A stretch of 64,000 nt of DNA from Pecten maximus (taxonomy: Eukaryota). The position numbers and the translations under genes were made by a program. The notes under the pieces are model-generated. The model ran no database searches and was not told where the DNA came from. It was given only the letters and a program-made list of their open reading frames with translations. Below are positions 14,683 to 41,243 of this stretch, piece by piece; position 1 is the stretch's first letter; each line of letters opens with the position of its first letter. The DNA is taken from NCBI RefSeq assembly GCF_902652985.1, contig NC_047022.1, forward strand, positions 43,338,001-43,402,000, read 5' to 3'.

Positions 14683-14840
14683 TAGTAGTCTAAATCTGAG
14701 ATTTAATAAACTATTAAAATGGCGGTTAGTAGTCTAAATCTGACATTTAATAAACCATTGAAATGGCGGTTAGTAGTCTAAAACTGAGATTCAATTAACT
14801 AGTGAAATGGCGGTAAGAAGTCTGAATCTGAGATTTAATA
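14683..14840. repeat. About 46-bp tandem repeat, about 3.5 copies
   Basis: Variants of tagtagtctaaatctgagatttaataaactattaaaatggcggt. Confidence 0.75.
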
Positions 14841-14897
14841 ATGAATAGTATATTGTAATTCGATGTTGACCTGGTTCCGTATTTCGGAGTGGCTATA

Positions 14898-17800
14898 TCA
14901 GTGATGTCCACAGGTTCCTGTAATTAAACAAGCATTGTTTGCATGACGATGGGTATTGTATTACAAAATCACTTATTCGGACACGAAACCAGAATATCAA
15001 CAACAAATCAGTTACCAATTCAAATTCCAGGTCATACAGATGTCCTTGCGATTTTTTTTAAATCAAATAGCCTGTATATTTAATTCACTCTCGTTGTATT
15101 TGGCTACCTTGCCATATAAATTACAGAACACAGCTGCAAATCCATGTTTTAAATATTTTCGACATAAAAAACTCCGGTTTGTATCGGTATAATAAAACGG
15201 GTATGATATGAGATTTAAGGAAATATAGTCAGTTTCTGGCTCCACTCGACCATGCCTATTTCCACGCATCAGCTTCGCTTTGGGAAATAGACCCGGTTCG
15301 GGAAACTGGAGAGTTGCTATATCCCTCATCCCCGTATTTTAACTGTACTAACACATCTCTCTTGCAAACCATTGTATCAACGAATCTCGGTATAAGGGAG
15401 ATAACTGTTTTTGGTGTATTCAAAATATTCTCTTTTGCTTTGGAAATGTAAACGAATAGTTTTTTTATGATCCCATGAATTAAATATATCATTGGTTAAG
15501 GTATCTGTATAAATGTTGTCATATTATTTGTTTCACTGTTAAGATATCAATAGTATAGGTATCTATTATTTGCTTCGCTATAAAAATGGCATTTGAAGCA
15601 TTTGGTGGTTCTCTTTGCTCGCAACCGAATTTACTGTTGGCATGGAATGCTTTTCAAATAATGTAATGTCCTGACCCAAAATTATATCTTTATTTTGTGT
15701 TAGTGATACTGGTTGCCTTCCAGTTGTTTAGGTCACATTCGTTCCTAACACTGTAGACAATTATACATGTCGTGTGCCCAGTACTAGGTTCTATGATTTC
15801 TATTAAAACTAGAATGCCTTTATACGAAGACTAAGCAATGTTGATGCGCTAATCCGCCATACAACACGACTTACCAGACTCGCCTATTGGAACCACGATG
15901 GTTCCGCTTCCTTTGCACACGAGACCGGGACCACACGGACATGCGTACTCCATACCGGTAGGGGGCGTATGGATATATCTAGCGTAACAACCTGTTGGAA
16001 AAAAATGTAAAAAAAATGAAAATCCAAATATATATATAGACATATACATAAATCTGATCTATTAAATATCTCATTTCGTCGATTAAACAAATATAACAAT
16101 TGCAATAACATATTTCGTTTAAATATCTACTTTATATTTTGTTTTCTATTTATTTTAATGTGCGTCTAATTCCGGAGGATTGGCAATTCATTATGGTATA
16201 CAGTAGGATAATGTGTTATTGTCCTAAATTTCCATATCAATGCTCTTGTAATGTATAATATTCAATTTGTGAACATAATTCTACCTTTTTGCGGGGTGGC
16301 TGGATAAATTGTTCATGATCAGTTAAAGTTTTTGTGCAAGTTTCTTCAGTAGAGTCTACACTTCAGTCACCTAATACGTTAATTACGTAATTCATGTGTA
16401 TGTTCTGGTAACTTATGTCTATGTTAGGGTAATCCATGTTTATGTTAGAGTAATTCATGTTTATGTTAGGGTAATTCATGTTGATGTTAGGGTAATCCAT
16501 GTTATGTTAGGGTAATCCATGTTTATGTTAGAGTAATCCATGTTTATGTAAGGGTAATCCATGTTTATGTTAGGGTAATTCATGTTTATGTTAGGGTAAT
16601 CCATGTTTATGTGAGGGTAATTCAGGTTTATGTTAGGGTAATCCATGTTTATGTTAGGGTTATTCATATTTATGTTAGGGTAATTCATGTTTATGTTCGG
16701 GTAATTCATATTTATGGTAGGGTAATTCATGTTTATGTTAGGGTAATTCATGTTGATGTTAGGGTAATCCATGTTTATGTTAGGGTAATTCATGTTTATG
16801 TTAGTATAAGTCATGTTGATGTGAGGGTAATTCATGTTTATGTTAGGGTAATCCATGTTGATGTATGGGTAATCCATGTTTATGTTAGGGTAATTCATGT
16901 TTATGTTAGGGTAATTCATGTTCATGTTAGGGTAATTCATGTTTATGTTAGGGTAATTCATGTTTATGTTCAGGTAATTCATGTTGATGTTAGGGTAAGT
17001 CATGTTGATGTGGGGGAAATCCATGTTTATGCTAGGGTAATTCATGTTTATGTTAGGGTAATCCATGTTTATGTTTGGGTAATCCATGTTTATGTTAGGG
17101 TAATCCATGTTTATGTTAGGGTAATCCATGTTTATGTTAGGGTAATTCATGTTTATTTTAGGGTAATTCATGTTGATGTTAGGGTAATTCATGTCTATGT
17201 TAGGGTAATTCATGTTGATGTTAGGGTAATTCATGTCTATGTTAGGGTAATCCATGTTTATGTTAGGGTAATTCATGTTTATGTTAGGGTAATTCATGTT
17301 TATGTTAGGGTAATTCATGTTGATGTTAGGGTAATCCATGTTTATGTTAGGGTAATCCATGTTGATGTGAGGGTAATTCATATTTATGTTAGGGTAATCC
17401 ATGTTTATGTTAGGGTAATTCATGTTTATGTTAGGATAATTCATGTCTATGTTAGGGTAATTCATGTTGATGTTTGGGTAATCCATGTTTATGTTAGGTT
17501 AATTCATGTTTATGTTAGGGTAATTCATGTTGATGTGAGGGTAATCCATGTTTATGTTAGGGTAAGTCATGTTTATGTTAGAGTAATCCATGTTTATGGT
17601 GGTGTAATTCATGTTTATGTTAGGGTAATTCATGTTTATGTTAGGGTAATTCATGTTTATGTTTGGGTAATCCATGTTTATGTTAGGGTAATCCATGTTT
17701 ATGTTAGGGTAATTCATGTTCATGTTAGGGTAATTCATGTTCATGTTAGGGTAATTCATGTTCATGTTAGGGTAATTCATGTTTATGTTAGGGTAATCCA

Positions 17801-19893
17801 TGTTTATGTTTGGGTAATCCATGTTTATGTTAGGGTAATTCATGTTCATGTTAGGGTAATTCATGTTCATGTTAGGGTAATTCATGTTTATGTTAGTATA
17901 AGTCATGTTGATGTGAGGGTAATTCATGTTTATGTTAGGGTAATCCATGTTGATGTATGGGTAATCCATGTTTATGTTAGGGTAATTCATGTTTATGTTA
18001 GGGTAATTCATGTTCATGTTAGGGTAATTCATGTTTATGTTAGGGTAATTCATGTTTATGTTCAGGTAATTCATGTTGATGTTAGGATAAGTCATGTTGA
18101 TGTGGGGGAAATCCATGTTTATGCTAGGGTAATTCATGTTTATGTTAGGGTAATCCATGTTTATGTTAGGGTAATTCATGTTTATGTTAGGGTAATTCAT
18201 GTTTATGTTAGGGTAATCCATGTTAATATTAGGGTAATCCATGTTTATGTTTGGGTAATTCATATTTATGTTAGGGTAATCCATGTTTATGTTAGGGTAA
18301 TCCATGTTTATGTTTGGGTAATCCATGTTTATGTTAGGGTAATCCATGTTTATGGTAGGGTAATTCACGTTTATGGTAGGGTAATCCACGTTTATGTTAG
18401 GGTAATACATGTTTATGGTAGGGTAATCCATGTTTATGTTAGAGTAATTCATGTTTAAGTTAGGGTAATCCATGTTTATGTTAGGGTAATCCATGTTTAT
18501 GTTAGGGTAATTCATGTTTATGTTAGGGTAATCCATGTTTATGGTAGGGTAATCCATGTTTATGTTAGGGTAATCCATGTTTATGTTAGGGTAATCCATG
18601 TTTATGTTAGGGTAATCCATGTTTATGTTAGGTTAATTCATGTTGATGTTAGGGTAATTCATGTTCATGTTAGGGTAATTCATGTTGATGTTAGGGTAAT
18701 CCATGTTTATGTTAGGGTAATTCATGTTTATGTTAAGGTAATTCATGTTGATGTGAGGGTAATCCATGTTTATGTAATGGTAATTCGTGTTTATGTTAGG
18801 GTAATTCATGTTTATGTTAGGGTAATCCATGTTTATGTTAGGGTAATCCATGTTGATGTTAGGGTAATCCATGTTTATGTTGGGGTAATTCATGTTTATG
18901 TTGGGGTAATCCATGTTTATGTTGGGGTAATTCATGTTTATGTTGGGGTAATTCATATTTATGTTAGGGTAATTCATGTTGATGTTAGGGTAATTCATGT
19001 TGATGTTAGGGTAATCCATGTTTATGTTAGGGTAATCCATGTTTATGTTAGAGTAATCCATGTTTATGTTAGAGTAATCCATGTTTATGTTAGGGTTATT
19101 CAGGTTTATGTTAGGGTAATTCATGTTTATGTTAGGGTAATCCATGTTTATGTTAGGGTAATTCATGTTGATGTTAGGGTAATCCATGTTTATGTTAGGG
19201 TAATCCATGTTTATGTTAGGGTAATCCACGTTTATGTTAGGGTAATCCATGTTTATGGTAGGGTAATTCATGTTGATGTTAGGGTAATTCATGTTTATGT
19301 TAGGGTAATCCATGTTTATGTTTGGGTAATCCATGTTTATGTTAGGGTAATCCATGTTTATGTTAGGGTAATCCATGTTTATGGTAGGGTAATTAATGTT
19401 TATGGTAGGGTAATATTCATGTTTATGTTTGGGCCATGTATAACTCCTGACATCACTGACGAATCCTAGACAGACGAAGCGACTATTATGATGTAGTTCA
19501 TCGGCGTATAATGTTGTTCAAAAATGTTACATTGTTGTATTAAGTTCTTTCTTAGACAATGTGAAGATTTCACATCCATTATATAATGTCGACCTTAGAT
19601 CTAGTGAATGATATTGTGCAAAATATAAACACAGGAGCTGTAGGTTTATTATGAAATTGCTTACACAATCGACGAATTCCAATTAGCTTTTCCCACATTA
19701 AGTGTTAAATTGCATTTCAAGGTTGTTTTTTAACAGTAATTCTTATCATGTACTTACTAGAACCATCCTGGCCCAATGGCCGACAGGTACCAGCCGCCAT
19801 GAGACCTCGCTTTCCAATCGGCTGGTTGTTTGCTACACAACATTCGCCATGCCCACAATCTGAGGCAGATGTACAGTCCTCTGCTGAGACAAA
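14898..19893 (-). CDS. Prokineticin/astakine-like (colipase-fold) 10-Cys secreted peptide, paralogue A; signal-peptide exon not found
   Basis: Exons 19893-19758, 15991-15875 and 14917-14898, with canonical AG/GT and phases 0/1/1. Translation [90 protein letters not shown]. Cys pattern C-x5-C-x4-CC-x17-C-x9-C-x15-CPC-x5-C-x15-C. Confidence 0.88.
16410..19430. repeat. 21-bp minisatellite containing TTAGGG, about 140 copies, in an intron of paralogue A
   Basis: Unit catgtttatgttagggtaat(t/c). Source of the MDYPNIN and RVIHVYV ORFs. Confidence 0.97.
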
Positions 19894-20293
19894 CTACAAA
19901 GGAAAGGAGTGCAATAAATGTACAGAAACTAACGTATACATAATCACATTTGAACATGTTAGTATGTAAAGAAAAGTTATTACAATTGATTAAATATATA
20001 TTGTTGACAAATTTTTTTTTTTCATTTTGAAATGTTTTTATTCATCCTTTTGCATTATTGTGAGTACATCAAATACATAGAAAAAGCATTAATTATAGAA
20101 TATGACAAAACAAATTGATTTGCGGTATTTTAGATAACTACATTTCTCAGGATTTTGTAAATTTGAAGCATGAAACAAAGACAATGACACTAAACCTATC
20201 ACGTTAACCTTTTTATTTCACCTTTATCGAAGTTTCGTGTGCAATATTTTGTTTTCTATCCATCATGATTAACTAATACGAGTCATCTTAAAT

Positions 20294-23200
20294 GATCTCC
20301 TGTGTCAGTAGATAGGTAACCGAGTCACTGTCACAACATTTATATAATGTTTAATCTCCTGTGTCAGTAGATAGAGAACCGAGTCACTGTCACAACATTT
20401 ATATGATGTTTAATCTCCTGTCAGTAGATAGAGAACCGAGTCACTGTCACAACATGTATATGATGTTTAATCTCCTGTGTCTGTAGATAGAGAACCGAGT
20501 CACTGTCACAACATTTATATGATGTTTAATCTCCAGTGTCAGTATAGAGAACCGAGTCACTGTCACAACATGTATATGATGTTTAATCTCCTGTGTCAGT
20601 AGATAGAGAACCGAGTCACTGTCACAACATTTATATGATGTTTAATCTCCTGTGTCAGTAGATAGAGAACCGAGTCACTGTCACAACATTTATATGATGT
20701 TTAATCTCCAGTGTCAGTATAGAGAACCGAGTCATTGTCACAACATTTATATGATGTTTAATCTCCTGTCAGTAGATAGAGAACCGAGTCACTGTCACAA
20801 CATTTATATGATGTTTAATCTCCTGTGTCAGTATAGAGAACCGAGTCACTGTCACAACATTTATATGATGTTTAATCTCCTGTGTCAGTAGATAGAGAAC
20901 CGAGTCACTGTCACAACATTTATATGATGTTTAATCTCCTGTGTCAGTAGATAGAGAACCGAGTCACGGTCACAACATTTATATGATGTTTAATCTCCTG
21001 TGTCAGTAGATAGAGAACCGAGTCACCGTCACAACATTTATATGATGTTTAATCTCCTGTGTCAGTAGATAGAGAACCGAGTCACTGTCACAACATTTAT
21101 ATGATGTTTAATCCCCTGTGTCAGTAGATAGAGAACCGAGTCACTGTCACAACATTTATATGATGTTTAATCTCCTGTCAGTAGATAGAGAACCGAGTCA
21201 CTGTCACACCATTTATATGATGTTTAATCTCCAGTGTCAGTATAGAGAACCGAGTCACTGTCACAACATTTATATGATGTTTAATCTCCTGTGTCGGTAG
21301 ATAGAGAACCGAGTCACTGTCACAACATTTATATGATGTTTAATCTCCTGTGTCAGTAGATAGAGAACCGAGTCACCGTCACAACATTTATATGATGTTT
21401 AATCTCCTGTGTCAGTAGATAGAGAACCGAGTCACTGTCACAACATTTATATGATGTTTAATCTCCTGTGTCAGTAGATAGAGAACCGAGTCACTGTCAC
21501 AACATTTATATGATGTTTAATCTCCTGTGTCAGTATAGAGAACCGAGTCACTGTCACAACATTTATATGATGTTTAATCTCCTGTGTCAGTAGATAGAGA
21601 ACCGAGTCACTGTCACAACATTTATATGATGTTTAATCTCCTGTGTCAGTAGATAGAGAACCGAGTCACTGTCACAACATTTATATAATGTTTAATCTCC
21701 AGTGTCAGTAGATAGAGAACCGAGTCAGTCACAACATTTATATGATGTTTAATCTCCAGTGTCAGTATAGAGAACCGAGTCACTGTCACAACATTTATAT
21801 GATGTTTAATCTCCAGTGTCAGTAGATAGAGAACCGAGTCAGTCACAACATTTATATGATGTTTAATCTCCAGTGTCAGTATAGAGAACCGAGTCACTGT
21901 CACAACATTTATATGATGTTTAATCTCCAGTGTCAGTAGATAGAGAACCGAGTCACTGTCACAACATTTATATGATGTTTAATCTCCTGTGTCAGTATAG
22001 AGAACCGAGTCACTGTCACAACATTTATATGATGTTTAATCTCCTGTGTCAGTAGATAGAGAACCGAGTCACTGTCACAACATTTATATGATGTTTAATC
22101 TCCTGTGTCAGTAGATAGAGAACCGAGTCACCGTCACAACATTTATATGATGTTTAATCTCCTGTGTCAGTAGATAGAGAACCGAGTCACTGTCACAACA
22201 TTTATATGATGTTTAATCCCCTGTGTCAGTAGATAGAGAACCGAGTCACTGTCACAACATTTATATGATGTTTAATCTCCTGTCAGTAGATAGAGAACCG
22301 AGTCACTGTCACACCATTTATATGATGTTTAATCTCCAGTGTCAGTATAGAGAACCGAGTCACTGTCACAACATTTATATGATGTTTAATCTCCTGTGTC
22401 GGTAGATAGAGAACCGAGTCACTGTCACAACATTTATATGATGTTTAATCTCCTGTGTCAGTAGATAGAGAACCGAGTCACTGTCACAACATTTATATGA
22501 TGTTTAATCTCCTGTGTCAGTAGATAGAGAACCGAGTCACCGTCACAACATTTATATGATGTTTAATCTCCTGTGTCAGTATAGAGAACCGAGTCACTGT
22601 CACAACATTTATATGATGTTTAATCTCCTGTCAGTAGATAGAGAACCGAGTCACTGTCACACCATTTATATGATGTTTAATCTCCAGTGTCAGTAGATAG
22701 AGAACCGAGTCACTGTCACAACATTTATATGGTGTTTAATATCCTGTCAGTAGATAGAGAACCGAGTCACTGTCACAACATTTATATGATGTTTAATCTC
22801 CTGTCAGTAGATAGAGAACCGAGTCACTGTCACAACATTTATATGATGTTTAATCTCCTGTGTCAGTAGATAGAGAACCGAGTCACTGTCACAACATTTA
22901 TATGATGTTTAATCTCCTGTGTCAGTATAGAGAACCGAGTCACTGTCACAACATTTATATGATGTTTAATCTCCTGTCAGTAGATAGAGAACCGAGTCAC
23001 TGTCACACCATTTATATGATGTTTAATCTCCAGTGTCAGTATAGAGAACCGAGTCACTGTCACAACATTTATATGATGTTTAATCTCCTGTGTCGGTAGA
23101 TAGAGAACCGAGTCACTGTCACAACATTTATATGATGTTTAATCTCCTGTGTCAGTAGATAGAGAACCGAGTCACTGTCACAACATTTATATGATGTTTA

Positions 23201-24070
23201 ATCTCCTGTGTCAGTAGATAGAGAACCGAGTCACCGTCACAACATTTATATGATGTTTAATCTCCTGTCAGTAGATAGAGAACCGAGTCACTGTCACAAC
23301 ATTTATATAATGTTTAATCTCCAGTGTCAGTAGATAGAGAACCGAGTCAGTCACAACATTTATATGATGTTTAATCTCCAGTGTCAGTATAGAGAACCGA
23401 GTCACTGTCACAACATTTATATGATGTTTAATCTCCAGTGTCAGTAGATAGAGAACCGAGTCAGTCACAACATTTATATGATGTTTAATCTCCAGTGTCA
23501 GTATAGAGAACCGAGTCACTGTCACAACATTTATATGATGTTTAATCTCCTGTGTCAGTAGATAGAGAACCGAGTCACTGTCACAACATTTATATGATGT
23601 TTAATCTCCAGTGTCAGTAGATAGAGAACCGAGTCACTGTCACAACATTTATATGATGTTTAATCTCCTGTGTCAGTAGATAGGGAACCGAGTCACTGTC
23701 ACAACATTTATATGATGTTTAATCTCCTGTGTCAGTAGATAGAGAACCGAGTCATTGTCACAACATTTATATGATGTTTAATCTCCTGTGTCAGTAGATA
23801 GAGAACCGAGTCATTGTCACAACATTTATATGATGTTTAATCTCCTGTGTCAGTAGATAGAGAACCGAGTCACTGTCACAACAGTTATATGATGTTTAAT
23901 CTCCTGTGTCAGTAGATAGGGAACCGAGTCACTGTCACAACATTTATATGATGTTTAATCTCCTGTGCCAGTATAGAGAACCGAGTCACTGTCACAACAT
24001 TTATATAATGTTTAATCTCCAGTGTCAGTAGATAGAGAACCGAGTTACTGTCACAACATTTATATCATGT
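20294..24070. repeat. 59-bp minisatellite, about 64 copies
   Basis: Unit atctcctgtgtcagtagatagagaaccgagtcactgtcacaacatttatatgatgttta, with 57-bp variants. Confidence 0.97.
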
Positions 24071-24072
24071 TT

Positions 24073-24082
24073 CTTTTTATAC
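24073..24082 (-). promoter_or_regulatory. Candidate TATA box upstream of paralogue A
   Basis: GTATAAAAAG on the minus strand, directly abutting the first unit of the 59-bp array. Confidence 0.3.
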
Positions 24083-24570
24083 TTAGGAGCCGTCAAACAC
24101 ATGTGATAAACGTCAACAATCAGTTGAATAATCTGATGTATAGAAAAATTACAACATCTGAATCGAATCTTAACATTGCTCACGGGTAATGTTCAATCAA
24201 ATGTTAACATTTCCCAGTGGGAATGTTCAATCAAATTTTATCAGTTCTTAGGGAGATTTTTTAATCAAATATTAACAATTTCTCAGTGGAAATGTTCAAG
24301 TAGGATTTCATTGGTTTATAAAATATGTTTTGACTGGATTTGCTGATTAGATTCTTCTTAAAAGACCGCCATTTATTATTGTGATTAGTTAATTGTTCGC
24401 ATTCAATTTATTTATTTTAAATCAGGACATGAAAACTGGATATGGAAAACCGGTGACTAAAAAATATCTATTTAAAGAACAAAACAACAAGAAATACTCA
24501 TTTATTCTTTATTTCGTTTACTTAAATATGGTATCCCGATACAAAATGGCGTTTCCAGTTTTATCATATT

Positions 24571-27500
24571 CTACAAGTGATGAGTGCAAACACCTGAAAA
24601 GCCATAGAGAAGAAACAAGTTAGTAGCATTTTTAGCTCAAGATACATTTAAAACAAATAAATGATGTACTTCACAGAGAGTCGTTTAGTGGAAATATTTC
24701 ATTTTAATTAAAAACGTCAATTTTTGCAATACAAGTAAATGAAAAATGAATTTACGTAACCGATAACTATTTACCTGATTCCCCAAGGGGTACCTCAAAA
24801 ACACCACTTCCTTTACACGTGAGGTGACCGTCACATGGACAAGAGGTTACGACGCCAGAGGGCGGTGTACTTGCACTTCCGTAACGGGTCAGGCAGTCTA
24901 GATATGACAAATATTTACATTGTAAGTTAATGTTTATCTTGTCCACACTACACCGCGGAAGTATTTTTTTCATCAACTCATTTGTTTATTTTGTAAATTC
25001 CATTACCATAAAGAGAAGTGTATTTTAATTAACGGAATTTCAAAAAGAAATGTTGGAATAAATTATTCCATTTGTAAATCGAAAATATATGTTAACTGCG
25101 AAAATATAACAATTTGTAAAATGATTATTTACATCTTTTTTATAATTCATGTATTGTTAAATCAAGTATCCAACAATAGAAACACACTCACGTGAGCCTT
25201 CCTTGCCCAGAGCCTGGCAGTGACCCGTTACAATAAGAAGCATCCGTTTCCCTATCGGCTGGTTGTTTGTAACACAGCATTCATTAGCTCGACAATCAAG
25301 GTGGGAGTGACATCCTTCTGACACACCAAACTGATTTAATAATGGTAACATACAGTAGTGGGAGTGACATCCTTCTGACACACCATACTGATTTAATAAT
25401 GGTAACATACAGTAGTGGGAGTGACATCCTTCTGACACACCATACTGATTAATAAGGTTAACATACAGTAGTATTTCGTGTGAATTTGGTCGATCTCCCG
25501 CATGGGTATGTACAGACTAAGGATCTATGTGATGCGTTTGATACCAACAGTTGTCAGGAACGTCAATATCTAATATGGATGTTATATGATGTTAGTAGAA
25601 TTGACGGAGGATCTAGGGGCCTGTAGTGTAGATACCTAGAGGGTGACGGAGGATCTAGGGGTCTGTAGTGTAGATACCTAGAGGGTGACGGAGGATCTAG
25701 GGGTCTGTAGTGTAGATACCTAGAGGTGACGGAGGATCTAGGGGTCTGTAGTGTGGATACCTAGAGGGTGACGGGGGATCTAGGGGTCTGTAGTGTAGAT
25801 ACCTAGAGGGTGACGGAGGATCTAGGGGTCTGTAGTGTAGATACATAGAGGGTGACGGAGGATCTAGGGGTCTGTAGTGTAGATACCTAGAGGTGACGGA
25901 GGATCTAGGGGTCTGTAGTGTAGATACCTAGAGGTGACGGAGGATCTAGGGGTCTGTAGTGTAGATACCTAGAGGGTGACGGAGGATCTAGGGGTCTGTA
26001 GTATAGATACCTAGTGGGTGACGGAGGATCTAGGGGTCTGTAGTGTAGATACCTAGAGGGTGACGGAGGATCTAAGGGCCTGTAGTGTAGATACCTAGAG
26101 GGTGACGGGGGATCTAGGGGTCTGTAGTGTAGATACCTAGAGGGTGACGGAGGATCTAGGGGTCTGTAGTGTAGATACCTAGAGGGTGACGGGGGATCTA
26201 GGGGTCTGTAGTGTAGATACCTAGAGGGTGACGGGGGATCTAGGGGTCTGTAGTGTAGATACCTAGAGGGTGACGGGGGATCTAGGGGTCTGTAGTGTAG
26301 ATACCTAGAGGGTGACGGAGGATCTAGGGGTCTGTAGTGTAGATACCTAGAGGGTGACGGATGATCTAGGGGTCTGTAGTGTAGATACCTAGAGGGTGAC
26401 GGGGGATCTAGGGGTCTGTAGTGTAGATACCTAGAGGGTGACGGGGGATCTAGAGGTCTGTAGTGTAGCTACCTAGAGGTGACGGAGGATCTAGGGGTCT
26501 GTAGTGTAGATACCTAGAGGGTGACGGGGGATCTAGGGGTCTGTAGTGTAGATACCTAGAGGGTGGCGGGGGATCTAGGGGTCTGTAGTGTAGATACCTA
26601 GAGGGTGACGGAGGATCTAGGGGTCTGTAGTGTAGATACCTAGAGGGTGACGGGGGATCTAGAGGTCTGTAGTGTAGCTACCTAGAGGTGACGGAGGATC
26701 TAGGGGTCTGTAGTGTAGATACCTAGAGGGTGACGGGGGATCTAGGGGTCTGTAGTGTAGATACCTAGAGGGTGGCGGGGGATCTAGGGGTCTGTAGTGT
26801 AGATACCTAGAGGGTGACGGAGGATCTAAGGGCCTGTAGTGTAGATACCTAGAGGTGACGGAGGATCTAGGGGTCTGTAGTGTAGATACCTAGAGGGTGA
26901 CGGAGGATCTAGGGGTCTGTAGTGTAGATACCTAGAGGTGACGGAGGATCTAGGGATCTGTAGTGTAGATACCTAGAGGGTGACGGGGGATCTAGGGGTC
27001 TGTAGTGTAGATACCTAGAGGGTGACGGATGATCTAGGGTTCTGTAGAGTAGATACCTAGAGGGTGACGGGGGATCTAGGGGTCTGTAGTGTAGATACCT
27101 AGAGGGTGACGGAGGATCTAGGGGTCCGTAGTGTAGATACATAGAGGGTGACGGGGGATCTAGGGGTCTGTAGTGTAGATACCTAGAGGTGACGGAGGAT
27201 CTAGGGGTCCGTAGTGTAGATACCTAGAGGGTGACGGAGGATCTAGGGGCCTGTAGTGTAGATACCTAGAGGGTGGCGGGGGATCTAGGGGTCTGTAGTG
27301 TAGATACCTAGAGAGTGACGGGGGATCTAGGGGCCTGTAGTGTAGATACCTAGAGAGTGACGGGGGATCTAGGGGTCTGTAGTGTAGATACCTAGAGGGT
27401 GACGGAGGATCTAGGGGCCTGTAGTGTAGATACCTAGAGGGTGACGGGGGATCTAGGGGTCTGTAGTGTAGATACCTAGAGGGTGACGGGGGATCTAGGG

Positions 27501-30500
27501 GTCTGTAGTGTAGATACCTAGAGGGTGACGGGGGATTTAGGGGTCTGTAGTGTAGATACCTAGAGGGTGACGGAGGATCTAGGGGTCTGTAGTGTAGATA
27601 CCTAGAGGGTGGCGGAGGATCTAGGGGCCTGTAGTGTAGATACCTAGAGGGTGACGGAGGATCTAGGGGTCTGTAGTGTAGATACATAGAGGGTGACGGA
27701 GGATCTAGGGGTCTGTAGTGTAGATACCTACAGGGTGACGGGGGATCTAGGGGTCTGTAGTGTAGATACCTAGAGGGTGACGGGGGATCTAGGGGTCTGT
27801 AGTGTAGATACCTAGAGGGTGACGGGGGATCTAGGGGTCTGTAGTGTAGATACCTAGAGGGTGACGGGGGATCTAGGGGTCTGTAGTGTAGATACCTAGA
27901 GGGTGACGGAGGATCTAGGGGTCTGTAGTGTAGATACCTAGAGGGTGACGGAGGATCTAGGGGTCTGTAGTGTAGATACCTAGAGGGTGACGGGGGATCT
28001 AGGGGTCTGTAGTGTAGATACCTAGAGGGTGACGGAGGATCTAGGGGTCTGTAGTGTAGATACCTAGAGGGTGACGGGGGATCTAGGGGTCTGTAGTGTA
28101 GATACCTAGAGGGTGACGGAGGATCTAGGGGTCTGTAGTGTAGATACCTAGAGGGTGACGGAGGATCTAGGGGTCTGTAGTGTAGATACCTAGAGGGTGA
28201 CGGGGGATCTAGGGGTCTGTAGTGTAGATACCTAGAGGGTGACGGAGGATCTAGGGGTCTGTAGTGTAGATACCTAGAGGGTGACGGAGGATCTAGGGGT
28301 CTGTAGTGTAGATACCTAGAGGGTGACGGGGGATCTAGGGGTCTGTAGTGTAGATACCTAGAGGGTGACGGGGGATCTAGGGGTCTGTAGTGTAGATACC
28401 TAGAGGGTGACGGGGGATCTAGGGGTCTGTAGTGTAGATACCTAGAGGTGACGGAGGATCTAGGGGTATGTAGTGTAGATACCTAGAGGTGACGGAGGAT
28501 CTAGGGGTCTGTAGTGTAGATACCTAGAGGGTGACGGGGGATCTAGGGGTCTGTAGTGTAGATACCTAGAGGGTGACGGAGGATCTAGGGGTCTGTAGTG
28601 TAGATACCTAGAGGGTGAGGGGGGATCTAGGGGTCTGTAGTGTAGATACCTAGAGGGTGACGGAGGATCTAGGGGTCTGTAGTGTATAGATACCTAGAGG
28701 TGACGGAGGATCTAGGGGTCTGTAGTGTAGATACCTAGAGGGTGACGGAGGATCTAGGGGTCTGTAGTGTAGATACATAGAGGGTGACGGAGGATCTAGG
28801 GGTCTGTAGTGTAGATACCTAGAGGGTGACGGAGGATCTAGGGGTCTGTAGTGTAGATACCTAGAGGGTGACGGAGGATCTAGGGGTCTGTAGTGTAGAT
28901 ACCTAGAGGGTGACGGGGGATCTAGGGGTCTGTAGTGTAGATACCTAGAGGGTGACGGGGGATCTAGGGGTCTGTAGTGTAGATACCTAGAGGGTGGACG
29001 GAGGATCTAGGGGTCTGTAGTGTAGATACCTAGAGGGTGACGGGGGATCTAGGGGTCTGTAGTGTAGATACCTAGAGAGGTGACGGGGGATCTAGGGGTC
29101 CTGTAGTGTAGATACCTAGAGGGTGACGGGGGATCTAGGGGTCTGTAGTGTAGATACCTAGAGGGTGACGGAGGATCTAGGGGCCTGTAGTGTAGATACC
29201 TAGAGGGTGACGGGGGATCTAGGGGTCTGTAGTGTAGATACCTAGAGGGTGACGGGGGATCTAGGGGTCTGTAGTGTAGATACCTAGAGGGTGACGGGGG
29301 ATCTAGGGGTCTGTAGTGTAGATACCTAGAGGGTGACGGAGGATCTAGGGGTCTGTAGTGTAGATACCTAGAGGGTGGACGGAGGATCTAGGGGTCTGTA
29401 GTGTAGATACCTAGAGGGTGACGGAGGATCTAGGGGTCTGTAGTGTAGATACCTAGAGGGTGACGGAGGATCTAGGGGTCTGTAGTGTAGATACCTAGAG
29501 GGTGACGGGGGATCTAGGGGTCTGTAGTGTAGATACCTAGAGGGTGACGGGGGATCTAGGGGTCTGTAGTGTAGATACCTAGAGGGTGACGGGGATCTAG
29601 GGGTCTGTAGTGTAGATACCTAGAGGGTGACGGAGGATCTAGGGGTCTGTAGTGTAGATACCTAGAGGGTGACGGGGATCTAGGGGTCTGTAGTGTAGAT
29701 ACCTAGAGGGTGACGGGGGATCTAGGGGTCTGTAGTGTAGATACCTAGAGGGTGACGGAGGATCTAGGGGTCTGTAGTGTAGATACCTAGAGGGTGACGG
29801 GGGATCTAGGGGTCTGTAGTGTAGATACCTAGAGGGTGACGGAGGATCTAGGGGTCTGTAGTGTAGATACCTAGAGGGTGACGGGGGATCTAGGGGTCTG
29901 TAGTGTAGATACCTAGAGGGTGACGGAGGATCTAGGGGTCTGTAGTGTATAGATACCTAGAGGTGACGGAGGATCTAGGGGTCTGTAGTGTAGATACCTA
30001 GAGGGTGACGGAGGATCTAGGGGCCTGTAGTGTAGATACATAGAGGGTGACGGAGGATCTAGGGGTCTGTAGTGTAGATACCTAGAGAGTGACGGAGGAT
30101 CTAGGGGTCTGTAGTGTAGATACCTAGAGGGTGACGGAGGATCTAGGGGTCTGTAGTGTAGATACCTAGAGGGTGACGGAGGATCTAGGGGTCTGTAGTG
30201 TAGATACCTAGAGGGTGACGGGGGATCTAGGGGTCTGTAGTGTAGATACCTAGAGGGTGACGGGGGATCTAGGGGTCTGTAGTGTAGATACCTAGAGGGT
30301 GGCGGAGGATCTAGGGGTCTGTAGTGTAGATACCTAGAGGGTGACGGAGGATCTAGGGGTCTGTAGTGTAGATACCTAGAGGATGATAGAGGATCTAGGG
30401 GTCTGTAGTGTAGATACCTAGAGGGTGACTGGGGATCTAGGGGTCTGTAGTGTAGATACCTAGAGGGTGACGGAGGATCTAGGGGTCTGTAGTGTAGATA

Positions 30501-31673
30501 CCTAGAGGGTGACGGGGGATCTAGGGGTCTGTAGTGTAGATACATAGAGGGTGACGGAGGATCTAGGGGTCTGTAGTGTAGATACCTAGAGGATGATAGA
30601 GGATCTAGGGGTCTGTAGTGTAGATACCTAGAGGGTGACGGAGGATCTAGGGGCCTGTAGTGTAGATACCTAGAGTGTGACGGAGGATCTAGGGGTCTGT
30701 AGTGTAGATACCTAGAGGGTGTCGGGGGATCTAGGGGTCTGTAGTGTAGATACCTAGAGGGTGACGGAGGATCTAGGGGTCTGTAGTGTAGATACCTAGA
30801 GGGTGACGGAGGATCTAGGGGTCTGTAGTGTAGATACCTAGAGAGTGACGGGGGATCAAGGGGTCTGTAGTGTAGATACCTAGAGGGTGACGGAGGATCT
30901 AGGGGTCTGTAGTGTAGATACCTAGAGGTGACGGAGGATCTAGGGGTCTGTAGTGTAGATACCTAGAGGGTGACGGAGGATCTAGGGGTCTGTAGTGTAG
31001 ATACCTAGAGGGTGACGGGGGATCTAGGGGTCTGTAGTGTAGATACCTAGAGGGTGACGGGGGATCTAGGGGTCTGTAGTGTAGATACCTAGAGGGTGAC
31101 GGAGGATCTAGGGGTCTGTAGTGTAGATACCTAGAGGGTGACGGAGGATCTAGGGGTCTGTAGTGTAGATACCTAGAGGGTGACGGGGGATCTAGGGGTC
31201 TGTAGTGTAGATACCTAGAGGGTGACGGAGGATCTAGGGGTCTGTAGTGTAGATACCTAGAGGGTGACGGAGGATCTAGGGGTCTGTAGTGTAGATACCT
31301 AGAGGGTGACGGAGGATCTAGGGGTCTGTAGTGTAGATACCTAGAGGGTGACGGAGGATCTAGGTGGTGTATTGCCCTTTAATGTTAATAAATGACATAA
31401 TTTTCAATGTAGGATTTCAAAATGATGGCAAGTAAATGTATCAATATTCAAACGTGATATACGCGTTACTTGAATGTACCACGTGACTTTTCTCCAACAG
31501 TAAGGACCCTAGCGCTTCCTTCCGAGCAAGCTATAATAATATAGGTTGACGTACCTTGTTCACAATTGTTGTGAGACAAATAAAGTCTATAGTTTTTACG
31601 ACAAACATGATGTTCTCACCATAAACACCACCGTTACGAGGAAGAGAGTGATACCAGCTGGTCTGAACGTCAT
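24571..31673 (-). CDS. Prokineticin/astakine-like 10-Cys secreted peptide, paralogue B (112 aa)
   Basis: Exons 31673-31620 (MTFRPAGITLFLVTVVFM, donor GTGAGA), 25330-25192, 24897-24775 and 24593-24571. Remainder: [94 protein letters not shown]. Same intron phases as A and C; AATAAA near 24501. Confidence 0.9.
25301..25471 (-). repeat. 57-bp triplication spanning the exon-2 splice acceptor of paralogue B
   Basis: Three copies of gtgggagtgacatccttctgacacaccaWactgatttaataatggtaacatacagta; possible exon starts at 25444, 25387 and 25330. Confidence 0.9.
25603..31363. repeat. 42-bp G-rich minisatellite, about 137 copies, in intron 1 of paralogue B
   Basis: Unit gacggRggatctaggggtctgtagtgtagatacctagagggt. 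Source of the YLHYRPLDPPSPSR ORFs. Confidence 0.97.
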
Positions 31674-32077
31674 CCTAGCACGTAATATGTCCAAGTCAGG
31701 TATCGGATGTGTATGTGTGCCAGGTAGTAATCTTATCAGTTAGACTGGTGTTAGATTCCAAGATTTTAACCACTGGAACGTACCAATGACAAATATAAAT
31801 AAAACTGATAAGGCTCCTTCCAGGTGACACTCTTTTCTCTAAATCCGAAACAATCACTTTATCTTCTGATTAGCTAAGAAAGTTTTAACAACACTCGACA
31901 ATAAACTTATACCTGAATTAGACCAATTCCTTATTCTACAGGCCCCATTGTTATAATTGTCATTAATTATGACATTCTCTTGTTACTGCTGTTGGACAGT
32001 TGTGTTAATATGTCGATAGCAGATGATGACCAAGTCAATGTGAACACTTTAACGTCTTCTTTCTACAGACAACATAA

Positions 32078-32232
32078 GGTAGGAGACGAAAAACAAGAAA
32101 TAGGAAATTCACGATTGAAAGATCAAAATAGAAGCTATCATACTTCATCGACGACACTCGCAAAGCTAGGGGACGAAAAACAAGAAATAGGAAATTCGCG
32201 GTTGAAAAATCAAAATAGAAGCTATCATACTA
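32078..32232. repeat. About 88-bp diverged direct duplication
   Basis: tagg(a/g)gacgaaaaacaagaaataggaaattc...caaaatagaagctatcatact occurs twice. Confidence 0.75.
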
Positions 32233-32542
32233 TTTATTGAATGTCATCCTTTTATATTCCGAGAAACGTAGATGTCGATGTGACCAGCTGATATAGAAGA
32301 GTTTGTAGTGTTAGTGTTATAGATTAGGTATATACAGTCGACGTTAACTTCCAATACATCGTCGGTCTTCTTTCCTTGCTTATGTTCTCTTTGATTTAAA
32401 GTTACAGGTGTGATGTTGGTATAAATTGGTTTTTACACACAGAATACACAACAGGTCAAAGTTAACGTAAACATTGTTTATTATCCTATACAGTTACAGA
32501 CTGTTTTATTAAAGCTTTAAACATTCCATCCGTCCACTGTCT

Positions 32543-35500
32543 TTAGTGATGAGTACATACACCTACAAACAAAAAGGAAATCACACACGTTTTACATGTA
32601 CACTACCTGATATTCCACCTAATCTCAATATCCAAATATCCTTGTTTTTCCATGAGAATCTTTGTTTTGATGATATTTTCTTTTTTTGTTCACAGGTCGA
32701 TATTGTTTTCTTGGTTTGTTGCTACACAATGTCATATTAAATATAAGTAAAGGAATCATCTCAAAACTATGGCGACATGACAGGTTTACTTAACCCAGGT
32801 AAACAATGACAATACAGGTATCCCTAACCCAGGTAAAACAATGACAATACAGGTATCCCTAACCCAGGTAATCAATGACAATACAGGTATCACTAACCCA
32901 GGTAATCAATGACAATACAGGTATCCCTAACCCAGATAATCAATGACATTACATGTATCCCTAACCCAGGTAATCAATGACAATACAGGTATCCCTAACC
33001 CAGGTAATCAATGACATTACAGGTATCCCTAACCCAGGTAATCAATGACAATACAGGTATCCCTAACCCAGGTAATCAATGATATTACAGGTATCCCTAA
33101 CCCAGGTAATCAATGACATTACTGGTATCCCTAACCCTGGTAATCAATGACAATACATGTATCCCTAACCCAGGTAATCAATGACATTACAGGTATCCCT
33201 AACCCAGGTAATCAATGACAATACAGGTATCCCTAACCCTGGTAATCAATGACAATACATGTATCCCTAACTATGGTAATCAATGACAATACAGGTATCC
33301 CTAACCCAGGTAATCAATGACAATACAGGTATCCCTAACCAAGGTAATCAATGACAATACAGGTATCCCTAACCAAGGTAATCAATGACAATACAGGTAT
33401 CCCTAACCAAGGTAATCAATGACAATACAGGTATCCCTAACCCAGGTAGTCAATGACAACACAGGTATCCCTAACCCAGGTAATCAATGACATTACATGT
33501 ATCCCTAACCCAAGTAATCAATGACAATACAGGTATCCGTAACCCAGGTAGTCAATGACAATACAGGTATCCCTAACCCAGGTAAACAATGATAATACAG
33601 GTATCCCTAACCCAGGTAATCAATGACAATACAGGTATCACTAACCCAGGTAATCAATGACATTACAGGTATCCCTAACCCTGGTAATCAATGACATTAC
33701 ATGTATCCCTAACCCAGGTAGTCAATGACAATACAGGTAACCCTAATCCAGGTAATCAATGACAATACAGGTAACCCTAACCCAGGTAATCAATGACATT
33801 TCAGGTATCCCTAACCCGGGTAATCAAAGACAATACAGGTATCCCTAACCCTGGTAATCGAAGACAATACAGGTATCCCTAACCCAGGTAATCAATGACA
33901 ATACAGGTATCCCTAACCCAGATAATCAATGCCATTACAGGTATCCCTAACCCAGGTAATCAATGACATTACAGGTATCCCTAACCCTGGTAATCAATGA
34001 CAATACATGTATCCCTAACTATGGTAATCAATGACAATACAGGTATCCCTAACCCAGGTAATCAATGACAATACAGGTATCCCTAACCAAGGTAATCAAT
34101 GACAATACAGGTATCCCTAACCAAGGTAATTAATGAAAATACAGGTATCCCTAACCCAGGTAGTCAATGACAACACAGGTATCCCTAACCCAGGTAATCA
34201 ATGACATTACATGTATCCCTAACCCAAGTAATCAATGACAATACAGGTATCCCTAACCCAGGTAATCAATGACAATACAGGTATCCCTAACCAAGGTAAT
34301 CAATGACAATACAGGTATCCCTAACCCAGGTAATCAATGACATTACAGGTATCCCTAACCCAGGTAATCAATGACATTACAGGTATCCCTAACCCAGGTA
34401 ATCAATGACAATACAGGTATCCCTAACCCAGGTAATCAATGACATTACAGGTATCCCTAACCCAGGTAATCAATAACAATACAGGTATCCCTAACTATGG
34501 TAATCAATGACAACACAGGTATCCCTAACCCAGGTAATCAATGACATTACAGGTATCCCTAACCCAGGTAATCAATGACATTACAGGTATCCCTAACCCA
34601 GGTAATCAATGACATTACAGGTATCCCTAACCCAGGTAATCAATGACAATACAGGTATCCCTAACCCTGGTAATCGAAGACAATACAGGTATCCCTAACC
34701 CAGGTAATCAATGACAATACAGGTATCCCTAACCCAGATAATCAATGCCATTACAGGTATCCCTAACCCAGGTAATCAATGACATTACAGGTATCCCTAA
34801 CCCTGGTAATCAATGACAATACATGTATCCCTAACTATGGTAATCAATGACAATACAGGTATCCCTAACCCAGGTAATCAATGACAATACAGGTATCCCT
34901 AACCAAGGTAATCAATGACAATACAGGTATCCCTAACCAAGGTAATTAATGAAAATACAGGTATCCCTAACCCAGGTAGTCAATGACAACACAGGTATCC
35001 CTAACCCAGGTAATCAATGACATTACATGTATCCCTAACCCAAGTAATCAATGACAATACAGGTATCCCTAACCCAGGTAATCAATGACAATACAGGTAT
35101 CCCTAACCAAGGTAATCAATGACAATACAGGTATCCCTAACCCAGGTAATCAATGACATTACAGGTATCCCTAACCCAGGTAATCAATGACATTACAGGT
35201 ATCCCTAACCCAGGTAATCAATGACAATACAGGTATCCCTAACCCAGGTAATCAATGACATTACAGGTATCCCTAACCCAGGTAATCAATAACAATACAG
35301 GTATCCCTAACTATGGTAATCAATGACAACACAGGTATCCCTAACCCCGGAAACCAACGAAATTATAAGGTGACACAACAATCTTCATAATTAACTACCT
35401 CAAACAGCGAGTGCTCGAAAGGCCAGCGTTCCTGTGCTTTGTATATATGGCTTATTTCATTATTATAACGTCAACGATTCAAAGAAGGTGTCAGTCAGCC

Positions 35501-37452
35501 AATTAAAATATAGGCATTTCCATACCGACAGGAACTGTTGTGAGCTACTGATTTAATTTTTTTTTTTTTTTTTCATGTAGATGAAATCTGATCTATTCTG
35601 CATCAAGTAAAGACTGAGTACCCGATTCGCCTAGCGGGACTTCAAAATAGCCGCTTCCTTTACACATCAGCCCAGCACCACATGGACATGCGTACACGAT
35701 ATCAGAGGGTGGTGTTGTGAGGCCTCCTCCGTACCGTACCAGACATCCTGAAAACACATCTAATGTGAAGGTCTGGACAGCAAGGCATTTTATCTTCTCT
35801 CGGAACTCATGTCGTGATCGTAAAATAATTTGCAAAATTGATAATTAAACTAATGATAATTGATAATTGAACTAACGATAATTGAAAATTGAACTATCGA
35901 TAATTGATAATTGAACTAACGATAATTGATAATTGAACTAACGATAATTGAAAATTGAACTATCGATAATTGATAATTGAACTATCGATAATTGATAATT
36001 GAACTATCGATTGTGTTTCTAACAGAGCGGGTGGCTATCAACTACCAATCCTCCACACATGTGCCTGTTAAAATTGAAGGAAATATAAAGATGGATTGAT
36101 CTCGAGGTCACCGTCACTCCGTGATCTTCAAATTAGTGATTTGGTCATTGCATACATATATATTTGTCATCTATCAAATAGATAATTTGTATGCCTTCGA
36201 TTTCGCCATAACAAAACTAAGATTCCAGGTGTTGAGAGAGCGAGAGGGAATGTCACCCTTGGAATATGGAGGATGCCGATACTTTAACTCACGTGCTCCT
36301 TGTTGGCCCATAGCTTGGCAGTGTCCGGCCTCTAGGAGGGACATTCGTCTCCCCCTGGGAGGATTGTTGGAGACACAACATTCGTTGGACCCACAGTCTT
36401 GTTGTGAATAACAGCCTTCTGATGAACCAAACTAACAAAGAAAAGTCAATTGTTTTATAACCGGATTTGACCTAGATTTGTATGACGGGTGTCGTCGTGA
36501 CCGAGATTTGTATGACGGGTGTCGTCGTGACCGAGATTTGTATGACGGGTGTCGTCGTGACCGAGATTGGTATGACGGGTGTCGTCGTGACGTAGATTGG
36601 TATGACGGGTGTCGTCGTGACCTAGATTGGTATGACGGGTGTCGTCGTGACCGAGATTGGTATGACGGGTGTCGTCGTGACCTAGATTGGTATGACGGGT
36701 GTCGTCGTGACCTAGATTTACATATTTGCCCCTCGTTTTGTCGATTCCAAGTAAGAGTTAAGGTTTCGTTATTATGTTGGGTATGTTGTTTTTGACAATC
36801 TCTTCATACACAGTGTTTGTTGACAATAAATATTGTCAATGATATATAAAGGTAGGTTATCAAACCATTGAGTATTTACACTAACATATATTGTATTGCT
36901 AACAGATACTCTATTATAAGAGAAATGATAACTAATCCGTTTGATCTACATAGATCTGGAGGCTTTGATACCGACATAAAACAATTATGTAAACTAACTT
37001 ATATTATTAATATTAACAGTCACATTGGCTTAAATCGTGTAAACCAGTGTCGTTGGTTTTATTTATTTGTTTTTGAATAGCAGAAGAAAATACACTATTA
37101 CAGAAGGATACCGAATCAATTATACAGTGACATTACGTCATATAGTCTAAACTTTGATTTACGTAAACACATTTACATGTTAAAATATACTATCGATAAT
37201 AATACTGTCGATAGTGGAACTACCTGACACGGGCATTCGGTTCATAACTGATCTGATATCATGATAACCTTATTTATAGGCGACAGTGCGGAGATACATA
37301 CATGTTATTTAGGGAGCAGCACTGACTGTCAACAACTTATCGAAAACACCACCAATGATACTGGAACAAAACGTGGCCTTGACCTCAACATTGCCGAGAT
37401 AACTTACCGAAAACAGTACCAAAAACACCAGGACAAAACTCGCCGCCATCAT
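32543..37452 (-). CDS. Prokineticin/astakine-like 10-Cys secreted peptide, paralogue C (109 aa)
   Basis: Exons 37452-37408 (MMAASFVLVFLVLFS, donor GTAAGT), 36431-36293, 35747-35622 and 32562-32543. Remainder: FGSSEGCYSQQDCGSNECCVSNNPPRGRRMSLLEAGHCQAMGQQGARCLVRYGGGLTTPPSDIVYACPCGAGLMCKGSGYFEVPLGESGVCTHH*. AATAAA near 32505 and 32477. Confidence 0.92.
32789..35347. repeat. 34-bp minisatellite containing CCCTAACCC, about 75 copies, in intron 3 of paralogue C
   Basis: Unit ccctaacccaggtaatcaatgacaatacaggtat. Confidence 0.97.
35835..36011. repeat. 22-bp AT-rich tandem repeat, about 8 copies
   Basis: Unit ttgataattgaactatcgataa. Confidence 0.85.
36467..36720. repeat. 30-bp minisatellite, about 8 copies
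   Basis: Unit gacctagattggtatgacgggtgtcgtcgt. A diverged single copy lies at about 47833-47875. Confidence 0.92.
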
Positions 37453-38548
37453 GGAATATTGCTATGTGATGGTAGTCTACAGATCCCCTTATCTGAACAT
37501 ACAACATTTACTGAAAGGTCATATCATACGCCTTTTCAGAAATAAATAGGAAATCCTCAGCAAAGGCTATAATGGACACCTCTTCATACTGAAATGCTGC
37601 ACAGACAGCTTCACTTGGGACACCCAATAAATTAGAGATTTGAACATCTTTGTCTGCTTGATCGAAGGCCGCATATACATAAACGGGATATTTGTTGACA
37701 AAATTGTTAAACAATGTATTAGACTATATCTCGCAAATTAGCTATATTTGCCTCTCTACAGTCTAAGTACAATATGACAGACAATATTGGGTGTATGCTA
37801 CCTAGGGCTAGGGTTAAGCTTAACCGCACTAACATTAGTTTATTGAAAACTAAATGTACAGGTGTATGTATGTTAAGGTTAAGAATTAAATACGACGAGA
37901 AAATATAAACTTAGAACTTACACGTTATATCTAGCTAAAATTATTTTTTTTGTGGTAAGTTTAAAAATAGATATGTTTTAATCAAAAGCCAACACAGTAA
38001 TAATATTCACATAACATTAGCTAATTGATGCAAATCATGAGTGTATGAAGTAAGCATGATTTTAAACAATACAGGTTTGCTTTAGAGATAGCAACAAGTG
38101 ATTTTAAGATTGTTTAAAATTCAATTCCAGTTCAATTTGTAAGTACATTATTTGATCTCACCCTGAGGTGTTTGACGTATAGCAGTTTTCCATGAAATTC
38201 ACCTTTAGATATAAGACATATCACTTTCATATGGTGAGAACCATTGTAATGACGAGAAAATAGTACACTGATGAAATTATACACAACTTAGCTCCACGAA
38301 AACGACATATTCTCGATGAATGAACCAACGATAATAAAGTGATCATGTTGGGAGTATGAGAGAAATATCTATGTGCTTTTTCTGTGTGCATTGTGGTTTC
38401 GACTTTTGCCATGATAAAGTTTGATTTCAGTTACTCGTTACTAGTTTCATTCTTCAAATTAATCGTTATTCAAGTAATTTCTCGATTGTATTCATCGATC
38501 ATATTTTACGAAAATTATAATCGTTCCGAAGACTGCATGCGATTAATG

Positions 38549-40752: not shown

Positions 40753-41109
40753 TATATACTTATTTATTGTATGCAGATACTAGTTTTATAAACTAGGGTC
40801 ATCTTGATTTAATTTGAATAGCATCCACAATCCGTGTATCTACGTTCGAAAAAAAGTTCAAATATGACCGGTATGAATCTGCAATGTTGTAATACGGTAT
40901 TAAAATAATGATACGCGACATTACTAATGAAATGATGTCTCGATCACCATGGTAACGGAGTGACCCCTAGCGTCATATAGTGACGTAACAACTGTGTAAT
41001 GCGGTTCTCGTATTAAATTGCGTGTAATCTGTACACTCTCTTTAATTACGTCCGTAATTTCTGAAAGTGGACATAATCTATATATGATAATAGTGTTATC
41101 ACCGTTGTC

Positions 41110-41243
41110 TTGTTTATAATGGCCACCATCCAGAGATAACGTGTGACACCTTCATAATGATACTCATATCAAAGTTATATTGTTTATAATGGTCACCATC
41201 CCGAGATCACGTGTGACACCTTCACAATGATACTCATATCAAG
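41110..41243. repeat. About 70-bp direct duplication
   Basis: ttgtttataatggYcaccatcc...gtgtgacaccttcaYaatgatactcatatcaa occurs twice. Confidence 0.8.

Follow-up and report, generated by a model that had tools for sequence, protein, structure and literature searches.

How a secreted peptide comes to be made from coding exons that possess no signal-peptide exon of their own is the question raised by a cluster of small exons in the genome of the scallop Pecten maximus, which occupies positions 14,898 to 37,452 of a 64,000-nucleotide stretch of contig NC_047022.1 (NCBI RefSeq assembly GCF_902652985.1, positions 43,338,001 to 43,402,000 of the forward strand; this whole stretch is hereafter termed the window). 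The analysis described here indicates, with high confidence that stops short of certainty, that the locus comprises three tandem three-exon cassettes and two leader exons, which encode peptides of the prokineticin/astakine family under purifying selection. The third of those cassettes is expressed by way of borrowed signal-peptide exons, an arrangement in which the polymerase must pass the intervening poly(A) signals.

Cassettes and leader exons

A six-frame regular-expression scan of the window identified three exons carrying the motif C-x5-C-x4-CC and three carrying CPC-x5-CKG, all of them colinear and on the minus strand, and no further exon of either kind elsewhere in the 64 kb. Cassette 1 consists of exon 2 at 36293-36431 (139 nt, encoding Cys1-5), exon 3 at 35622-35747 (126 nt, encoding Cys6-9 and the CKGSG...GES tail) and a terminal exon whose coding part lies at 32543-32562 (20 nt, G-VCTHH-stop, encoding Cys10), with AATAAA at 32510. 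The corresponding elements of cassette 2 are found at 25192-25330 (139 nt), 24775-24897 (123 nt) and 24571-24593 (23 nt, G-VCTHHL-stop), with AATAAA at 24513, and those of cassette 3 at 19758-19893 (136 nt), 15875-15991 (117 nt) and 14898-14917 (20 nt, G-TCGHH-stop), with ATTAAA at 14839. Canonical AG/GT dinucleotides were observed at every exon border, both by reading of the DNA and by a script check, which further found the translation of each exon to be an exact substring of some RefSeq protein; the intron phases are 0/1/1.

Each product contains ten cysteines, separated by 5, 4, 0, 17-18, 9, 15-18, 1, 5 and 15 residues, and all three products share the tail CKGSG-x3-VP-x-GESG-x-C. The last coding segment, G-[VT]-C-[TG]-H-H, is kept in all three cassettes and provides the final cysteine, which is invariant across the family, and the mature part encoded by each cassette amounts to roughly 85-90 residues. 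An initial sequence-only reading of this DNA had reported these exons, their phases, the ten cysteines and the shared tail, and each was recovered at the same minus-strand positions by the scan, the DNA reading and the script. Its description of exons of only 20 nt was accurate for the coding part (20, 23 and 20 nt in cassettes 1, 2 and 3), but those segments are the coding start of terminal exons that then continue into the 3' untranslated region, with a poly(A) signal approximately 30-60 nt past the stop codon in every cassette. At the start of cassette 2, a 57-bp tandem repeat in three copies (25301-25472, minus strand) triplicates, in frame, the splice acceptor and first 29 nt of exon 2; splicing to an upstream copy of the acceptor would lengthen the product by 19 or 38 residues, each copy contributing two further cysteines.

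While the mature-peptide cassettes number three, the leader exons number two, each of them encoding a hydrophobic N-terminus. Leader exon 1 (37408-37452, minus strand, 45 nt) encodes a 15-residue signal peptide, MMAAS...LFS, and ends in phase 0 at the donor GTAAGT; leader exon 2 (31620-31673, minus strand, 54 nt) encodes an 18-residue signal peptide, MTFRPAG...VVFM, ends in phase 0 at the donor GTGAGA, and is common to cassettes 2 and 3. An alternative 5' coding segment at 31555-31608 (minus strand) makes use of a downstream donor and of a second ATG that follows a short upstream open reading frame; it appears in a RefSeq isoform beginning MFVVKT..., encodes a poor signal peptide and is probably a minor or non-productive splice form. 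A partial and degenerate duplicate of leader 1 also lies at approximately 37341-37370 on the minus strand, within intron 1 of cassette 1 (about 77% identity over 39 nt), where ATAAGT replaces GTAAGT.

For cassette 3, no candidate first exon combining an ATG, a hydrophobic stretch and a GT donor was present in 19894-24570 outside a 59-bp array, and blastn and tblastn searches of 19894-24570 with both leaders recovered no remnant of either. Of the three genes of identical exon structure that had been proposed, the three exon sets therefore stand; the third lacks a first exon, and two leaders serve three cassettes. All leaders end in phase 0 and all cassettes start in phase 0, so that every combination of leader and cassette is in frame.

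The spliced products are identical to existing Pecten maximus RefSeq proteins, which were found by searches with single exons and then with full-length proteins; those database proteins were used for all full-length analyses, and the exon translations were compared with them only as substrings. Leader 1 with cassette 1 yields XP_033748839.1 (P0001, 'U3-aranetoxin-Ce1a-like'), the N-terminus of which corresponds to leader 1 and the C-terminus to the terminal exon at 32543-32562. Leader 2 with cassette 2 yields isoform X1 of LOC117333589 (P0006, XP_033748834.1), to which the alternative donor adds isoform X2 (P0004, XP_033748835.1), and retention of the last intron of cassette 2 adds isoform X4 (P0005, XP_033748838.1). 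Leader 2 with cassette 3 yields 'astakine-like isoform X3' (P0095, XP_033748837.1), whose C-terminus is encoded at 14898-14917; RefSeq thus models cassette 3 as an isoform of the cassette 2 locus that employs the cassette 2 leader. The suggestion that the cluster was hidden from annotation was accordingly mistaken, since every product is already in RefSeq and the family itself has been described (PMC8398477, PMC8557429).

RNA evidence for shared leaders

Assembled RNA contigs from four runs (X1 to X4) belonging to two studies were compared with 19434-20294, the region surrounding exon 2 of cassette 3; the junctions compared with RNA are the exon 2-exon 3 junction of that cassette and the junction upstream of it, while the remaining junctions rest on RefSeq models and conservation. 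Between 5 and 8% of the sampled words of 14600-20000 were present in the RNA runs, which fits the presence of exons alone. Contigs covered 19756-19894 in all four runs, and depth was zero in bins 19898-19984. The downstream loose end of the exon 2 contigs corresponded in every run to the start of exon 3 (15960-15989, without mismatch).

The upstream loose end of those same contigs corresponded to the 3' end of leader 2 in runs X2, X3 and X4, which span both studies. In X3 it matched 31619-31648 without mismatch and in X2 with two mismatches, while in X4 a comparison by eye, from which the first two letters (exon 2 positions 19893 and 19892) were set aside, found one base to differ. In run X1 the upstream end instead matched leader 1 at its 3' end (37409-37438, with one mismatch), with a join that runs exactly from donor 37408 to acceptor 19893. 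The introns that connect cassette 3 to a leader would accordingly measure 11.7 kb (leader 2) or 17.5 kb (leader 1), and that between leader 2 and cassette 2 measures 6.3 kb. The expectation of spliced RNA at the predicted junctions was thus borne out for exons 2 and 3 of cassette 3 in all four runs, while the upstream join proved to be to a distant leader and not to a first exon of the cassette's own. The X2-X4 contigs end 25-31 nt into leader 2, as contigs from a 31-mer assembler do at a branch, which suggests that in those samples leader 2 was also joined to another exon, one fitting cassette 2.

The contigs differ from the reference in the codon that opens exon 2 of cassette 3 (19892-19893), where F becomes V in X3 and S in X4, and those of a 2015 study carry A>G at two sites (19816 and 19858); all of these differences are probably polymorphisms. 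Three runs also yielded very short RNA contigs (35-61 nt) at 20025-20089, one of which has a loose end finishing in ...TTTTCAG. No contig linked them to exon 2 of cassette 3, and they probably derive from a repeat expressed elsewhere.

Family, fold and age of the peptides

A family profile (A1), constructed from 37 single-domain homologues and searched against PDB sequences, matched Bv8 (2kra) with an E value of 8.7e-7, MIT1 (1imt) with 9.7e-6 and U33-theraphotoxin (2n8k) with 2.5e-5, followed by Dkk1/2 and colipase. Across those 37 homologues nine of the cysteines are invariant and one is conserved in more than 90%. A phmmer search with the cassette 1 product returned 88 cluster representatives, many of which carry 2-5 tandem domains; those examined individually belong to scallops, oysters, mussels, unionids and gastropods and to the annelid Owenia, and bear names that include prokineticin-1-like, prokineticin Bm8-f-like, U19-ctenitoxin-like and 'Prokineticin domain-containing protein'.

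The corresponding fold was examined using AF2 models of the products of cassettes 1 and 2, which are predicted and not experimental structures, with a predicted local distance difference test (pLDDT) value of 82. In VIA-align comparisons MIT1 was the best match to both (Z 8.5 for cassette 1 and 8.1 for cassette 2, with 76/80 residues aligned), followed by procolipase (7.6 and 7.7), Dkk1 (6.4), Bv8 (6.2 and 6.4) and the theraphotoxin 2n8k (6.1); the top ten rows were all colipase-fold proteins, and the next rows fell to Z 3.6-4.1. Foldseek likewise ranked MIT1 first, with probability 1.00 and a template-modelling score of 0.74 on the target. Among Pfam families, PF06607 (Prokineticin) matched the cassette 3 product at 27.6 bits, above its gathering score of 21.6. 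PF17556 (MIT-like atracotoxin) matched P0001 at 14.9, P0003 at 13.7 and P0028 at 17.1 bits, all below its gathering score of 27.5, and Colipase_C matched at 16-19 bits, below 23.7; searches conducted exon by exon produced only sub-threshold matches to Colipase_C, DKK and DX, too weak to decide the matter. By profile, by fold searches with predicted models and, for cassette 3, by PF06607, the products are assigned to the prokineticin/Bv8/MIT1/astakine family and to the colipase fold, as the sequence-only reading had proposed; it is that fold, and not the colipase sequence family, that the scallop peptides share with colipase.

The same reading had noted that the AVITGA motif is missing, and before Cys1 the three products indeed carry FGSSEG, FGVSEG and FVSAED. 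These six residues are variable, and their position is unconserved across the 37 homologues. A separate motif, P-x-G-[KR]-R, is found nearly family-wide in the long loop between Cys4 and Cys5 (residues 40-44 of P0001, with equivalents in P0006, P0095 and A1), and that loop is the part of the mature domain with the lowest pLDDT. To judge from its letters, the motif resembles a dibasic, amidation-type processing site, and a two-chain peptide could result. A distant family member, 39% identical to P0095, is also present on another chromosome (C7:11151673-11151915; L001 1941-2291, minus strand), where the ten-cysteine domain lies in a single open frame without an intron between the equivalents of exons 2 and 3.

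The cassettes are 57-64% identical to one another over the mature peptide, a figure that does not confirm their earlier description as strongly diverged. Exon-by-exon Nei-Gojobori comparisons gave a proportion of synonymous differences of 0.70-0.85, which is saturated, together with non-synonymous divergence (dN) of 0.22-0.39 and a ratio of non-synonymous to synonymous divergence (dN/dS) of approximately 0.1 or less. Maximum-likelihood analysis united the six scallop sequences in one clade (support 98/94), within which cassette 1 grouped with Mizuhopecten and Argopecten irradians proteins (99/94), cassette 2 grouped with a Mizuhopecten 'prokineticin-1-like' protein (100/95), and cassette 3 was weakly sister to the cassette 2 pair. 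Cassettes 1 and 2 have one Mizuhopecten orthologue each, at 80-83% identity, and the two orthologues probably reside on one contig, both being recorded with a longest contig of 446,840 bp. As judged from these comparisons, the expansion is local and scallop-specific and preceded the split between Pecten and Mizuhopecten, and all three copies are old and under purifying selection. Of the proposal that the family is locally expanded and diversifying, the first part is thus upheld by the tree; diversifying selection was ruled out by dN/dS values near 0.1 with saturated dS, and the Mizuhopecten orthologues also speak against it. Littorina 'isoforms' were compared for a similar cassette-like design, and their differences are too few to tell.

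Probable working of the locus and its meaning

In the working model that these observations favor, leader 1 would be spliced to cassette 1, and leader 2 either to cassette 2 or, by read-through of that cassette's poly(A) site, to cassette 3; leader 1 would on one observed occasion have been joined to cassette 3. The products would be secreted, with signal cleavage expected from the -3/-1 rule at 0-2 residues before Cys1, and the mature domain would be of colipase type, with five disulfides presumed from its ten cysteines. With no AVITGA motif and no prokineticin receptors (PKRs) in protostomes, the scallop peptides would act through another receptor, and they should be unable to serve as vertebrate-type PKR agonists. 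By analogy, an astakine-like cytokine or signalling role, exerted on haemocytes or other tissues by way of another receptor, is favored over a role in defence, with about even confidence. Of the more far-reaching view, that the 23-kb region is one combinatorial locus in which two promoter/leader exons are joined to any of three cassettes by regulated splicing coupled to poly(A) read-through, it can be said that it is possible, but doubtful; if true, one promoter would deliver different astakine-type ligands by tissue or state, and cassette 3, its own promoter lost, would depend wholly on its neighbours.

Several points weigh against the picture of three cassettes and shared leaders. The RNA comparison covered one exon of one cassette, and used assembled contigs as opposed to raw reads, without quantification, transcript starts or transcript ends. 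The junction of leader 1 with cassette 3 consists of one contig from one run, in which the leader mismatches the reference at one base, and a deletion haplotype might account for it instead, since such haplotypes could mimic long-range splicing. The Pfam Prokineticin check, which cassette 3 passes, places the other two products below the gathering score of 21.6 (11.8 bits for P0001, no match for P0006). Finally, the function assigned to the peptides is drawn only from work on crustacean and oyster astakines.

The reading of the peptides as humoral defence effectors (antimicrobial, anti-parasite or toxin-like) in place of cytokine-like signals fares best among the alternatives, and is tentatively entertained here as the less probable of two roles. 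The RefSeq names point to spider venom peptides (aranetoxin, ctenitoxin), the family has undergone lineage-specific expansion, and Biomphalaria genes named 'U3-aranetoxin-Ce1a-like' show constitutively higher levels in snails resistant to schistosomes and are induced upon exposure (PMC13619432). However, the label 'antimicrobial' in that study is an annotation and not an assay, and the only functional tests found cited for invertebrate members (crayfish and shrimp astakine, oyster CgAstakine; PMC8398477) describe haematopoietic or cytokine activity. The strength of purifying selection and the age of the orthologues are likewise more in keeping with a conserved receptor interaction than with an arms race.

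A second alternative holds that the junctions between leaders and cassette 3 represent deletion haplotypes, generated by unequal crossing-over between minisatellite-rich paralogous introns, and not alternative splicing. The composition of the locus lends this some appeal: four large and mutually unrelated arrays, together with three smaller ones, make up approximately 70% of it. A 21-bp minisatellite of 145 copies (16387-19433) fills intron 2 of cassette 3; the 59-bp array of 65 copies (20295-24072) separates the poly(A) site of cassette 2 from exon 2 of cassette 3; a GC-rich 42-bp array of 137 copies (25602-31364) fills the intron from leader 2 to cassette 2; and a 34-bp array of 75 copies (32780-35347) fills intron 3 of cassette 1. 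The species is moreover highly polymorphic, the contigs depart from the reference at several positions, among them the first codon of exon 2, and the leader in run X1 is one base off the reference leader 1 and is not truncated at the 30 nt expected of a shared branch. The region of leader 1 is also represented by a divergent haplotig, an unplaced contig of 8568 bp (C2353) that is 90-93% identical to 36895-41798, leader 1 included. Its first 2.3 kb contain no match in the window and no Cys-motif exon, which indicates that haplotypes differ structurally just downstream of leader 1 but is uninformative on the X1 junction. Against these points, the leader 2 junction recurs in three runs that span two studies, RefSeq models it on the reference assembly, the ends of the X2-X4 contigs suggest a branch from leader 2 to another exon in the same samples, and the reference haplotype possesses no cassette 3 leader and yet has cassette 3 conserved. 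An origin of the junctions in deletions is therefore considered improbable.

The remaining alternative, in which three independent head-to-tail genes would each possess a promoter and signal exon of their own and the upstream-leader junctions would be read-through noise, draws on the intact, constrained and (by Pfam) most typical state of cassette 3, on the usual retention of promoters by tandem paralogues and on the small number of contigs observed (four), but is very hard to credit when neither a leader candidate nor a remnant is found in 19894-24570 outside the 59-bp array, when RNA depth is zero directly upstream of the cassette 3 acceptor and a distant leader is present in all four contigs, and when RefSeq itself assigns cassette 3, as isoform X3, to the cassette 2 locus.

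The reading of shared leaders and three cassettes places the locus beside several known systems. In the oyster, five prokineticin/astakine transcripts (Cragi-prokineticin-1 to -5) encode ten cysteines without AVITGA, and PKR is not found in protostomes (PMC8398477); prokineticin/astakine-related precursors are broadly distributed in lophotrochozoans, without a known receptor (PMC8557429). The activity of astakines in crayfish, shrimp and oyster is described in work cited by PMC8398477 as haematopoietic or haemocyte-proliferating, with ATP synthase beta proposed as a haemocyte surface receptor. Crayfish astakine, oyster CgAstakine and the Cragi-prokineticins resemble the scallop peptides in their signal peptide, single ten-cysteine prokineticin domain and absence of AVITGA, as well as in protostome hosts that lack PKR-type receptors (PMC8398477, PMC8557429); the scallop differs in that two leader exons serve three cassettes and in that its peptides are known here from sequence alone. 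Vertebrate prokineticins, Bv8 and MIT1 share the framework C-x5-C-x4-CC...C-x9-C...C-P-C-x5-C...C, while the scallop peptides lack the AVITGA that PKR activation requires, score (in copies 1 and 2) below the Pfam gathering score, and, relative to Bv8 and MIT1, possess a longer Cys4-Cys5 loop with the conserved P-x-G-[KR]-R and a longer Cys9-Cys10 tail. The spider MIT-like atracotoxins, aranetoxins and U33-theraphotoxin (PF17556; 2n8k) belong to the same colipase-fold superfamily, and copy 1 is named after them; unlike those toxins, the scallop peptides fall below the PF17556 gathering score, are not venom-gland products and have no known toxin activity.

With respect to architecture, loci in which duplicated 3' coding cassettes follow common upstream exons include calcitonin/CGRP, the insect serpin-1 gene with its alternative reactive-loop exons, and SPAG11, a fusion of two beta-defensin genes. 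These resemble the scallop locus in that a common 5' part, which in the scallop is the signal peptide only, is spliced to mutually exclusive duplicated downstream units. In the scallop, by contrast, the exchanged unit is an entire cassette of three exons that brings its own stop codon and poly(A) site, so that cassette 3 can be chosen only if the cassette 2 poly(A) signal is read through, and a second, neighbouring leader may be used. Further references on loci with shared upstream exons are PMC10513286 and PMC9741552.

The cluster belongs, as an ordinary member, to a lophotrochozoan family that was already known, and knowledge of that family is itself unchanged; the shared-leader architecture, already partly represented in RefSeq, is its only unusual point and is mildly interesting. 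The locus further illustrates that Gnomon-type pipelines already recover genes with tiny exons, and that 'hidden gene' calls from raw sequence need to be checked against RefSeq first. Protostome prokineticin/astakine peptides are widespread orphan ligands without a known cognate G-protein-coupled receptor (PMC8557429), linked in crustaceans and oyster to haemocyte production. Two or three mature peptides placed behind shared signal exons would represent a compact system for the differential deployment of paralogous ligands, and the scallop locus is also suited to the question of how a duplicated gene survives the loss of its own promoter.

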